Shown here piece by piece: positions 414 to 3,784 of a stretch of 32,518 bases of DNA. Made by a program: the position numbers and the translations under genes. The number at the start of each line of letters is the position of its first letter. Position 1 is the first letter of the stretch. A model generated the notes under the pieces. The model had not been told where the DNA came from. It did not search any database and was given only the letters and a program-made list of their open reading frames with translations. Origin of the DNA: Octopus bimaculoides (Eukaryota); the NCBI RefSeq assembly GCF_001194135.2, contig NC_069000.1, forward strand, positions 16,008,650 to 16,041,167, read 5' to 3'.

Positions 414-434
414 TCGGTTCAGTAGTAGTAGTAG
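414..434 (-). CDS. Gene 1 Thr-rich stalk micro-exon 4, (T)TTTTEP
   Basis: ttgtttaattttag| 21 nt |GTTAGT; phase 1-1; 15 nt shorter than its siblings, an in-frame difference. Confidence 0.65.
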
Positions 435-568
435 CTAAAATTAAACAAGAAAAATGAAATATTATATAACAAATCCAATATACTTTTCAATTCCTTTTAT
501 TAATTTAAAATAGTAAACTAGTCGGAAATCAAGATAAGATGTATAAATGTAGGAGCTGAGCTACCCGA

Positions 569-1203
569 TGTGATACCCGATGGTCCAAGGGCTTTCCCAG
601 TCTTCATTTTCTTAATTGCCTTATCTATTGTATTGCTATCAATTCTGATGGTTGGTCCCTCAATTGTTTCAATATTTGAAAGACTCTCCTTCTCCCAATC
701 ATTCCCCCACATTTAACAACCTTTCATAATGGCATCTCCAAGCATCTTTCTTCTCTGAGTCACTAAGCGCAAGCATACCGTTATCCATTCGTACACATTT
801 CTCACCTACCACATCTTTTTTTCTCTCTGATACACTGCTTTGTAATCCTGAACACCTCACGCCTCCAATCCTTACGTTGTATAACATTGGCAAAGCTCCT
901 TGTTATAATGCTTTGCTTCCACTGTTTTTCCAGTTATTCCAGGTATGTCTCTTTGCTTTTATACCATTGTCCACCTCCTTGTTCCACCACCAAGTCACCC
1001 TCGGCTTGGCTGCGACTTTGCACCAAGCACAAATTTGGTCAGCGGCACCCAGTAAATTGTCCCGCAGGAACTACCAGTTATCCTCTAAGATATACATGTC
1101 CCTTCCACTTCCGCCTTTCTATCATGAGAGCTTCCTGTTGGTTTGCTGGGTTTTTGAGCTTCCATAATCATATTTTCCAACATAGTGTTTTTGAGTCTCT
1201 CTA
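569..1203 (-). mobile_element. Degraded RTE-like non-LTR retrotransposon fragment (region upstream of RT)
   Basis: Broken frames give TWWWNKEV..IKAKR..WNNWK, AWRCHYERLLN and AIKKMKTGKALGPSGIT, typical pre-RT LINE motifs. Confidence 0.75.
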
Positions 1204-1572
1204 GTCCTAATTTGTTACTTCGTTTAACATTATCTTCCTGACAACGTAAATGTTATGTGTATGATAATCAGTACTTTCGTTTTCGTTCCATAGTGAAGGC
1301 GTTACATCAGAATGATGTAGATATAAGGCTATATACTTTGGAGAAACGAATTTAAAATAGAACCTGGTACAAGCCAGTATTATATTATTATTGACATCTG
1401 GCAGGATGAAAGCATGACAAACTGGACCTTAGCGGAATTGGAGCTCAGAACTCAAACGAACAGATATGCTGCAAAAGGTCTTTGACGAGACACTGCTAAT
1501 TTGTCCCATTAGTGGGCACAGAAGAATGCAATTGTGTAGAATGAAATTAAGATAAGAGAAAAATTTACTTAC

Positions 1573-1608
1573 TCGGTTTAGTAGTGGTAGTTATTGTTGT
1601 CGTCGTAG
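1573..1608 (-). CDS. Gene 1 Thr-rich stalk micro-exon 3, (T)TTTTITTTTKP
   Basis: ttgtttaattttag| 36 nt |GTAAGT; phase 1-1; no stop. Confidence 0.75.
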
Positions 1609-3183
1609 CTAAAATTAAACAAGAAAAATGAAATAACATACAGCAAATGAAATACACTTTTCAATTCCTTTTATTAATTTAAAATAGTAAACTAGTCGGA
1701 AATCAAGACAAGATGCATAAGTTTAGGAGCTGAGCTACAAGAATCGACTTAAAAATATTCCCAAACCTTATGATTGGAAATCGATCTTGAATTAGCATTT
1801 AATCGAAATATGGATGAGATTAACTTTATAGAAAAAGTTTGGTTTATATATATATGCACACACATGGCAGGGTGTCCCACACTGTATCTGTCTAACAAAT
1901 TTACAAATGTACTGACAAAGTATTGGTCTGTCCGGGGCTATAGTAGAAGACACTCTCCAAGGTGCCGTGCAGTGAGATTGAACCAAGAAAGCATAAACAT
2001 ATGGTTTAAAAGCAAACTGACTGGGAGAGGCATCTCTGTACGATGTGAACTCAGAAATAAAGGGGTGTGAATAAATACTGAAAAAGTCGTTTGTTCCGAA
2101 CTCTGATTCTGCTATTCCGATGTCTTTTAGCAACGCTGATAATATTTCTACTAAAGGCACAAGGTCTGAAATTGTTTGGAGAAGTGGGTAATGATTTCAT
2201 CGACTCCACTGGTCAAATGGTATTTTATCGACACCAAAGGATGAAAGGCCAAAGTTGACCTTGGCGATATTTGAATTTAGAACGTAAAAACGGTCGAAAT
2301 ACTAGGAAGCACTTTGAGTGGCGTGCTAACGATTCTGTCAGCTCACTAACTTTTTCTGAATAATAATTTATTCGTTACACACAAGGAAATTTCAGGTTAA
2401 TTTGAAAGTGTAATAGAGTCGGAAGCTTATAGAAAGCCATGAAATTCATAATTTGTTTTGATACTGTATTTTTTTTTTATATCAAAGCTTTTCATACATG
2501 TGATGGGCTAAAGTTAATTTTAGAACAGTACAGAAGAATGTGAGAATATATTTGAAAAATATATTCTTTGCTCTCTCTGTCCCCACCTCTATCTATGCAT
2601 CCCCACACGCTCTCTCTCCCTTTTTTCTCTGCGTGTATATCTTTATATATATATATATATATATATAGGTAAATGATAGGATTGCTTCAATTTTTCAGGG
2701 GTAGTCTGAAGTATCCAAGCAACCAGGGGATGTTTAAATCCGGAGGCACTCCTGGGAATTACTTGTGTGGGTACCGTCTTCGTTAGAGGGTATCCAGAGG
2801 CAGGTAATTTATTGTTTAAACCGCAGTTTATAATTATATAATCTACACATAATTAAAACAATGGCGAACTAGCCCAACCGGATTACTTCTTCTTGTCTTT
2901 GTTTCTCCATTCTCCACATAACTNNNNNNNNNNNNNNNNNNNNNNNNNNNNNNNNNNNNNNNNNNNNNNNNNNNNNNNNNNNNNNNNNNNNNNNNNNNNN
3001 NNNNNNNNNNNNNNNNNNNNNNNNNNNNNNTATATATATATATATATGTTTATATGTATAAAAAATTGCTATAGACAGCCGAGTGCAATGTGTTGACTAG
3101 ACACTGCTAATATGTTCCACTAGTGGACACAAAAGAATGAAATTGTGTAGAAAGAAATTAAGATAAGAGAAAAAATTACTTAC

Positions 3184-3219
3184 TCGGTGTAGTAGTGGTA
3201 GTTATTTTTTTCGTAGTAG
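3184..3219 (-). CDS. Gene 1 Thr-rich stalk micro-exon 2, (T)TTKKITTTTTP
   Basis: ttgtttaattttag| 36 nt |GTAAGT; phase 1-1; no stop. Confidence 0.75.
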
Positions 3220-3748
3220 CTAAAATTAAACAAGAAAAATGAAATATCATATAGCAAATAAAATGCACTTTTCAATTCCTTTTATTAATTTAAAATAGTA
3301 AACTAGTCGGAAATCAAGATAAGATGTATAAATGTAGGAGGTAAGCTACACGAAATGACTTTTAAAATTCCAAAACTTTATGATTAGAATTCGATCTTGA
3401 ATTGGCATTTAATCGAATTATGGGTGAGATTACCTTAACAGGAAAGTTCGGTTTATATACATACATACATACATATAAAAGGAGAATCTATCCCTTGACG
3501 CCTGACATGTTAGTCCAGCGGAACCAAGCGAAACAAATTTACTGAAAAAGTATTGGCCTGTCTGGGGCTATAGTTGAAGACACTCTCCCAAGGTGACGTG
3601 CAGTGAAATTGAACCCGGGAACATATGCTTGAAAAGTGAACTGACTAGGAAAGGCATCTCATTACGAAGTAGTTTAAATCTATGAGAATTTATCAAGATA
3701 TCATAGATTTCCCCTATTAGTGGACAGAATGGAATGAAATGAACTTAC

Positions 3749-3784
3749 TAGGTTTAGCAGTGGTAGTTGTTATTTTCGGAGGAG
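3749..3784 (-). CDS. Gene 1 Thr-rich stalk micro-exon 1, (A)PPKITTTTAKP
   Basis: ttgtttaatttcag| 36 nt |GTAAGT; phase 1-1; no stop. Confidence 0.75.

Follow-up and report, generated by a model that had tools for sequence, protein, structure and literature searches.

Tandemly duplicated micro-exons likely encode a constitutive, mucin-like C-terminal segment of a two-immunoglobulin-domain protein in Octopus bimaculoides

The stretch of DNA considered here, hereafter the window, comprises 32,518 nucleotides (nt) of the genome of Octopus bimaculoides, is AT-rich and interrupted by many assembly gaps, and carries an array of four very short exons (E1 to E4) whose translation is rich in threonine. 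An earlier note, made from the letters alone, had described this array as a mucin-like stalk built from tandemly duplicated micro-exons behind an immunoglobulin (Ig) head. When the exons of the window were translated and compared with a protein database, a 100% match was obtained with the O. bimaculoides 'uncharacterized protein LOC128250266', for which RefSeq holds two models, XP_052830963.1 (isoform X1) and XP_052830964.1 (isoform X2). The array is the 3' part of this gene, which lies on the minus strand (Table 1). The product consists of a signal peptide, likely starting at the second methionine (MKLLFIISL...), two Ig-fold domains, the first V-like and the second C-like, and a tail rich in Thr, Pro and Lys. 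The leader, V-like and C-like exons followed by E1, E2 and E3, all read from the window, give both RefSeq models residue for residue, and these three micro-exons make up 108 nt of the 888-nt coding sequence (CDS). Sequence beyond the window was read from the flanking locus of the same assembly (GCA_001194135.2, record CM046620.1), hereafter L002, where window position x corresponds to 21683 - x.

Table 1. Features of the LOC128250266 locus and its paralogue in window coordinates; slashes mark splice junctions
Feature	Position	Strand	Description
Leader exon (CDS part), LOC128250266	11559-11682	-	MLCGETTIAERRRLIPPLSSCLLTAMKLLFIISLRLSDNSA; phase 1 end, donor gtaagt; from ORF list and RefSeq chain
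V-like Ig-fold exon, LOC128250266	8424-8744	-	321 nt, phase 1-1; D-E-G-P-Y-R-C motif
C-like Ig-fold exon, LOC128250266	7097-7426	-	330 nt, phase 1-1; ends ...LYAK + G (...AAA G/gtaaaa)
Micro-exon E1	3749-3784	-	36 nt; tttcag/CTCCTCCGAAAATAACAACTACCACTGCTAAACCTA/gtaagt; peptide (A)PPKITTTTAKP (APPKITTTTAKP); both RefSeq isoforms
Micro-exon E2	3184-3219	-	36 nt; ttttag/CTACTACGAAAAAAATAACTACCACTACTACACCGA/gtaagt; peptide TTTKKITTTTTP; both RefSeq isoforms
Micro-exon E3	1573-1608	-	36 nt; ttttag/CTACGACGACAACAATAACTACCACTACTAAACCGA/gtaagt; peptide TTTTTITTTTKP; both RefSeq isoforms
E3 donor read-through (X1 C-terminus)	1565-1572	-	X1 reproduced exactly
Micro-exon-like E4	414-434	-	21 nt; ttttag/CTACTACTACTACTGAACCGA/gttagt; peptide TTTTTEP; neither RefSeq isoform
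Unit with E1, shortest copy	3737-4021	-	self-BLAST, alignment
Unit with E2	3093-3670	-	self-BLAST, alignment; homology stops at 3093
Unit with E3, longest copy	1215-2046	-	self-BLAST; SINE-like piece at 1904-1984
Unit with E4	43-564	-	self-BLAST; window start 42 bp past unit, adjoining 2,089-N gap
Insert unrelated to units, between units E3 and E4	565-1214		no unit homology
Assembly gap	2924-3030		107 N within E2-E3 intron
Terminal coding exon of paralogue LOC128250265	17400-17436	-	(R)NYSEPLKQTTP-stop; predicted from DNA, then found in XP_052830961.1

The four segments were read on the minus strand where the earlier note had placed them, with the lengths, AG acceptors and GT donors it had given. 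Each is in phase 1 at both ends, with two leading bases that complete a codon and one extra base that trails. The acceptors are pyrimidine-rich (TTTCTTGTTTAATTT(T/C)AG, given also as TTTAATTTYAG), and the donors are strong GTAAGT sites in E1-E3 and a weakened GTTAGT, with T at +3, in E4. Re-read from the sequence, the peptide behind the C-like exon runs A-PPKITTTTAKP / TTTKKITTTTTP / TTTTTITTTTKP / TTTTTEP, in the order first proposed. When the full window was scanned on both strands for YAG, 12-75 nt (a multiple of 3) and GT[AT]AGT, open in phase 1 and with at least 50% Thr, Pro or Ser, E1-E4 were the only matches. The absence of these exons from the list of open reading frames (ORFs), another observation of the note, was confirmed, as no ORF of at least 60 amino acids contains any of them; Tandem Repeats Finder, in addition, reported no microsatellite at E1-E4. 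Since the four exons are paralogous copies, the properties common to them were inherited and do not represent four independent coincidences. The independent support for the micro-exons is that E1-E3 are exactly exons of the two RefSeq protein models.

Both annotated isoforms include E1, E2 and E3 and skip E4, and they differ only in the termination step, each protein stopping 1-2 residues beyond E3. The annotated transcripts thus use E1-E3 constitutively, and the resulting tail, APPKITTTTAKPTTTKKITTTTTPTTTTTITTTTKP, has 36 residues. Isoform X1 ends through read-through of the E3 donor, (A)GT AAG TAA, which reads Ser-Lys-stop (...KPSK-stop), so that a transcript left unspliced at this site still ends cleanly. 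Isoform X2 ends after one codon (...KPR-stop) at 'GG TAA' in L002 24336-24340 (cttag/GG TAA), in a terminal exon ~2.7 kb beyond the window, past a gap of 2,089 N. Candidate acceptors for this 'R-stop' exon within the window (~1082 and ~1001) were ruled out; the site at L002 24336 reproduces X2 exactly. In-frame stops likewise stand just past the donors of E2 (CCG AGT AAG TAA) and E4 (CCG AGT TAG), and read-through from the E1 donor continues for 10 codons until a stop. The X2 terminal exon (L002 24322-24373) possesses two acceptors 7 nt apart, ttttag/TTCTTAG/GG, of which the annotated one leads to R-stop and the upstream one to a 45-nt phase 1-1 exon, ILRVKWAWRKPKSNA, the counterpart of IPKIKFAWRRRPKSNA in Octopus vulgaris; the pair may constitute a frame switch at the C-terminus. 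Combinatorial splicing of the micro-exons, which the earlier note had suggested, finds no footing in these models, as no exon-skipping among E1-E3 is present in the two annotated isoforms.

The protein part that precedes the micro-exons was examined at the level of fold. AlphaFold, supplied with a 21-sequence family alignment, predicts two beta-sandwich domains, within which the predicted local distance difference test score (pLDDT) is mostly >90 (137 residues at 90 or above), and a tail with a pLDDT of ~42, in which residues 264-295 stay <50 and lack secondary structure. The best Foldseek matches of the model are antibody Fab and single-chain Fv (scFv) chains, at probability 1.00, and more than 1,400 matches were returned at E <=0.001. 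The family alignment shows little or no variation in its Cys, Trp, Asp and Tyr columns, among them a Cys/Trp/Cys core, and SDEGPYRC occurs in the V-like exon. Sequence searches gave weak matches to Ig-repeat proteins with phmmer (P0036 at 4.7e-8, P0038 at 8.7e-4) and no match to Pfam Ig families, at E up to 1, for the LOC128250266 protein or two paralogues. An Ig head in front of the micro-exons is supported at fold level by the AlphaFold model and its Foldseek matches. Of the 36 residues of the tail, which form three 12-residue modules, 21 are Thr and 5 are Pro (72%), and its Thr/Pro/Lys-rich composition and predicted disorder agree with the mucin-like composition previously ascribed to it. 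By this composition, the tail is probably O-glycosylated in the manner of a mucin.

Self-BLAST and alignment reveal four copies of a 0.3-0.8 kb unit, 82-89% identical to one another and each with one micro-exon, which upholds the tandem-duplication origin put forward in the earlier note. At this level of identity the copies are too divergent to be an assembly or haplotype duplicate. A piece resembling a short interspersed element (SINE) is common to the units of E2 and E3, and its insertion therefore predates their duplication. The insert between the units of E3 and E4 may be transposon-derived, perhaps a retrotransposon fragment; its short ORFs gave no Pfam match. Apart from the embedded SINE-like piece, the unit was not found elsewhere in ~58 kb of other O. 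bimaculoides sequence, and an Rfam search of window 1-8000 gave no match. Between copies, identity amounts to 78-90% in the exons, 85-92% in the upstream intron flanks and 88% in the downstream flanks (E2-E4). The units of E2 and E3 reach a peak of 92-96% identity, with no indels, from ~120 nt upstream to ~50 nt downstream of the exon, compared with 26-90% further upstream; the peak could stem from gene conversion as well as from constraint on the signals for splicing.

Assembly gaps touch the array at several points. The 107-N gap lies inside the E2-E3 intron, and hence no reading frame crosses it. L002, being the same assembly, holds the same 107 N and hence is no independent check of physical continuity at this place. 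E2 is joined directly to E3 in both RefSeq proteins, and no two neighbouring exons of the array are spaced by less than 565 bp, ~5 times the estimated length of the gap. The unit homology on the E2 side ends beside a (TA)n run and the gap, and this run probably caused the gap. The gap at 5029-5302 is likewise intronic, the models joining the C-like exon directly to E1. Downstream, the 2,089-N gap (L002 21683-23771) abuts window position 1 and falls between E4 and the annotated last coding exon, and a second gap, of 2,560 N, follows further on in L002.

A word-indexed database returned only LOC128250266 itself, and it was an exhaustive HMMER search that found relatives, namely 33 cluster representatives at E <=0.001. 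The family members that were looked up belong to O. bimaculoides, O. sinensis, O. vulgaris and Argonauta hians, and a literature search on this two-Ig family found nothing relevant. The best HMMER match, CAI9737738.1 of O. vulgaris, is a mis-fused model that contains five tandem copies ~80% identical to LOC128250266. A Thr-rich region follows the C-like domain in all five copies (33, 36, 40, 53 and 40 residues) and is composed of 3-6 modules, each Pro-terminated like the O. bimaculoides micro-exons, as far as boundaries at the protein level tell. The first module, (A/V)PPKTTTAKP, matches E1 bar an in-frame 2-residue difference, and the short modules TTTEKP and TTTTAKP resemble E4; from the protein model it is inferred that one module would correspond to one exon in O. 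vulgaris as well. The occurrence of in-frame Thr-rich modules in these copies indicates that frame and composition have been kept across species and that the number of modules appears to vary among paralogues. Of the earlier suggestion that copy-number change could tune the reach of a stalk, the variation in module number is thus retained and the tuning of reach is not. In L002 25259-25373, 24 of 24 residues equal those at the C-terminal end of CAI9737738.1 (VYYAIHRLLLFIRLLSFTSSNRPI), and 13 of 14 are identical after a 1-nt frame shift; this segment, which is better conserved than the Ig domains, could reflect coding sequence, a conserved 3' untranslated region (UTR) or an assembly indel.

The origin of the unit may be reflected in a neighbouring paralogue, LOC128250265. 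Over the V-like and C-like domains, the two genes, the first and second in the window, are only 27% identical. The 32 nt upstream of the acceptor of its terminal exon (17444-17474) match the unit at the same relative position, with 90.6% identity and E = 9e-6 in BLAST. In local alignments compared with dinucleotide shuffles, the score was z = 7.3 against the unit of E3 and z = 1.3-2.9 against the other three. The unit is probably a duplicated former terminal exon, similar to that of LOC128250265, that gained a GTAAGT donor, and such an origin would explain the in-frame stops 1-2 codons past the donors of E2, E3 and E4.

Together, these data make it likely that the array encodes a constitutive, mucin-like C-terminal segment of a secreted two-Ig octopus protein, built by duplication and evolving in length by gain and loss of units. 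A genomic unit of 0.3-0.8 kb would have gone through at least four tandem duplications, and one short exon with its own acceptor and its own donor would have come with every copy. As the phase 1-1 of these exons is that of the Ig-domain exons, each added copy would insert ~12 residues and leave the frame undisturbed. E4 would be a shortened copy with a weakened donor, passed over by the annotated transcripts; E3, if spliced, would join the distant exon in which X2 stops after one codon. The resulting tail would form the disordered, probably O-glycosylated C-terminus of the secreted protein, and its length would evolve by unequal exchange between units and not through tuning by alternative splicing, the unit itself probably stemming from a short terminal exon like that of LOC128250265.

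Several points weigh against this interpretation. The exons and introns of the copies show no significant difference in divergence in any pair (Fisher p >=0.46), and E2 and E3 differ at four sites, three of them with an effect on the encoded amino acid. With exons no better conserved than introns, sequence evolution within the array does not point to purifying selection acting on the peptide. The earlier note had held that divergence at neutral intronic rates, frameshifting indels included, would speak against coding exons; the rate is indeed intronic, and the number of frameshifting indels among the exon copies is zero, a value that is not significant with 36 sites. The XP_ models, moreover, are computational RefSeq predictions, and we infer that the RefSeq pipeline normally reports 36-nt exons and alternative isoforms only with transcript evidence. 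CAI9737738.1 is a chimera of five genes, seen as a protein model only. In it, the Thr-rich region runs on into IPKIKFAWRRRPKSNA and a further exon, and the true C-terminus of the octopus protein may differ from that of the RefSeq models. The 2,089-N and 2,560-N gaps downstream, finally, could conceal additional units or an anchor exon.

The intronic rate of exon divergence would also be expected if the segments were pseudo-exons, that is, non-coding repeats with degenerate (ACT)n in which splice sites, frame and lengths are by-products of duplication and slippage and which the models over-predict. E4 includes a perfect (ACT)4, trinucleotide slippage yields length changes in multiples of 3, and ACN codons cannot reach a stop in one step, so that an open frame is weak evidence of coding. 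This account is nevertheless very improbable, as exactly these three exons are used by two RefSeq isoforms, Tandem Repeats Finder reports no microsatellite at the exons, each of the five O. vulgaris copies, at ~80% overall protein identity, retains E1-like and other Thr-rich modules in frame, and the identity of the E2 and E3 units culminates around the exon. A gene end in decay appears unlikely as well, though better placed: here, the array would once have continued into more coding exons, and the insertion at 565-1214 and a frame-breaking shift of acceptor would have truncated the protein after E3, leaving E4 and the downstream exons as relics and the tail without a function related to its length. 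The unrelated sequence between the units of E3 and E4 and the weakened E4 donor agree with it, and so do the stop of X2 after a single codon of an exon whose O. vulgaris counterpart reads IPKIKFAWRRRPKSNA, and which in O. bimaculoides would be in frame only from the acceptor 7 nt upstream, and the frame shift that interrupts the next downstream exon after complete identity to O. vulgaris. Against this, the O. vulgaris model fuses five genes and is unreliable, the downstream 'exons' may be conserved 3' UTR, and the 1-nt difference could be an assembly error.

A further reading, which follows the mechanism of the earlier note, takes the protein for an anchored Ig receptor with the array as its membrane-proximal stalk; the reach of the Ig head would be set by the combination of symmetric exons included, and a membrane anchor is required. 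Any subset of E1-E4 would be compatible with the frame, the skipping of E4 makes at least one unit optional, and the wider family does have anchored members. Its proteins end after the C-like domain in different ways, with no tail, with a short Pro-rich linker, a transmembrane (TM) segment and a cytoplasmic tail, or with an end resembling a glycosylphosphatidylinositol (GPI) signal. The last is seen in LOC106878952 (same chromosome, ~27 Mb away; 14143-14286 of locus L001), where TPITTTTTKKPTTTTTRRP and then a hydrophobic GPI-signal-like end are encoded in a single terminal exon with the same 'AG/CT AxT ACT' phase-1 junction as the micro-exons, and the two large downstream gaps leave room for an anchor exon in LOC128250266. 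However, neither the window nor what is readable of the 10 kb that follow it in L002 showed a TM or GPI-signal exon. With tblastn, the TM and GPI tails of the family gave nothing convincing in the window or in this 10-kb flank, and the O. vulgaris tail gave nothing in the window. The one weak tblastn match in the window, at 39-119, was rejected as an anchor exon, being intronic unit sequence that contains a stop. A decayed GPI signal in the intron after each micro-exon, an idea prompted by 'P/VSKFFSYLNFILHNFI...' (+1 frame) and 'P/VSGSGVQFSKWVLIINLILLL' of LOC106878952, found no support either, the best local alignment being a block of 16 nt with p ~0.03 in two of the units and 0.3 in the third one. 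Both RefSeq isoforms contain E1, E2 and E3 and end without an anchor, none of the closest family members of LOC128250266 possesses one, a TM or GPI signal being absent from its nearest paralogues and, as modelled, from the copies of O. vulgaris, and in LOC106878952 the stalk shares its exon with the GPI-like signal and is not assembled from micro-exons. On this evidence an anchored stalk is improbable for LOC128250266, and the terms 'stalk' and 'reach' are not supported for it, although a stalk function is conceivable for the wider family. A related idea, to which we accord little probability, is a graded-length device of an octopod-specific Ig-type receptor or effector, in which every unit brings a splice donor with a stop codon shortly after it, stopping or skipping unit by unit would yield a ladder of tail or stalk lengths and the 7-nt acceptor pair would switch to an anchor or to a basic WAWRRR peptide, giving tethered and free forms.

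The constitutive, duplication-built tail that we favour has architectural parallels in known systems. In human IgG3 (IGHG3), up to four hinge exons are present, and allotypes differ in whether they carry one, two or three copies of the repeated type (PMC4202688). This is the closest parallel, for in both cases an Ig-domain exon is followed by tandem short exons with their own introns, duplication lengthens a flexible linker containing Pro and Thr, and copy number varies between versions of the gene, in octopus as far as the modules of the protein models tell. Sequence homology is lacking, however, and the IgG3 hinge is Cys/Pro-rich and lies between Ig domains, whereas the octopus array is Thr-rich and C-terminal as annotated; moreover, the variation in copy number is so far seen between paralogues and species in octopus and between allotypes in IgG3. 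The micro-exon genes (MEGs) of Schistosoma encode secreted proteins through runs of very short, frame-keeping exons separated by much longer introns (bioRxiv 10.1101/2023.06.21.545858). Secretion and frame-neutral short exons are common to MEGs and the octopus gene, but the CDS of a MEG is mostly micro-exons, 10-20 per gene, whereas those of the octopus gene cover 108-129 of ~890 coding bases beside ordinary Ig-domain exons. Exon skipping creates protein variants in MEGs; no skipping variants are annotated in the octopus gene, and the lineages are unrelated.

In Ig-mucin proteins, such as the TIM family and the CD8 stalk, and in the GPI-anchored variable lymphocyte receptors (VLRs) of lampreys, binding domains, of Ig type or other, lead into a stretch rich in Thr and Pro, presumably extended and O-glycosylated. 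The octopus relative LOC106878952 is laid out alike, with its stalk and GPI-signal-like end in one exon, but no anchor was found for LOC128250266. The variant exons of CD44 and the PEVK exons of titin also form runs that encode an unstructured segment, whose length is set by documented, regulated exon inclusion, which is the mechanism that the earlier note had in mind; in contrast, both annotated octopus isoforms include the same three exons. The micro-exons E1-E3 were already in RefSeq and had hitherto been undescribed, and the array is an ordinary case of exon duplication that opens no long-standing question. Their value lies in a clean, datable example of linker growth by tandem duplication of a self-contained unit of acceptor, frame-neutral exon, donor and back-up stop, and in drawing the attention of comparative immunologists and cephalopod biologists to an uncharacterised two-Ig-domain family with secreted, GPI-like or transmembrane members.

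Paralogous genes of the two-Ig-domain type form a small cluster in the window, with further members at 17400-23375 on the minus strand and 29986-30290 on the plus strand. To LOC128250265 belong a leader at ~23312-23375, a V-like exon in ORF 20790-21251 and a C-like exon in ORF 19090-19449, and a third V-like exon lies on the opposite strand in ORF 29986-30315. Between the first two Ig genes sits a retroelement fragment, a gap-interrupted ORF (13152-13982, minus strand) with a weak match to PF13966, the reverse-transcriptase zinc-binding region (E = 6e-6, 27.2 bits against a cut-off of 27.5 bits). An inverted duplication of ~800 bp (24852-25652 and 26754-27581), with arms 82-95% complementary, encloses an ORF (25894-26277, minus strand) that, judged by eye, has the look of a mariner-type transposase remnant, and each arm seems to contain a leader-exon-like sequence with an early stop (24951-25033 and 27399-27481), which may be a broken leader of the family. 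Two dispersed SINE-like families occur at window 2193-2344, 8227-8344, 12343-12503, 22996-23135 and 29302-29472, and also at 1904-1984 and 19666-19807, and recur in the unrelated locus L001. Degenerate telomere-like (CCCTAA/TTAGGG)n sequence is present in introns at window 10440-10520 and L002 24745-24830, possibly as part of a repeat element.

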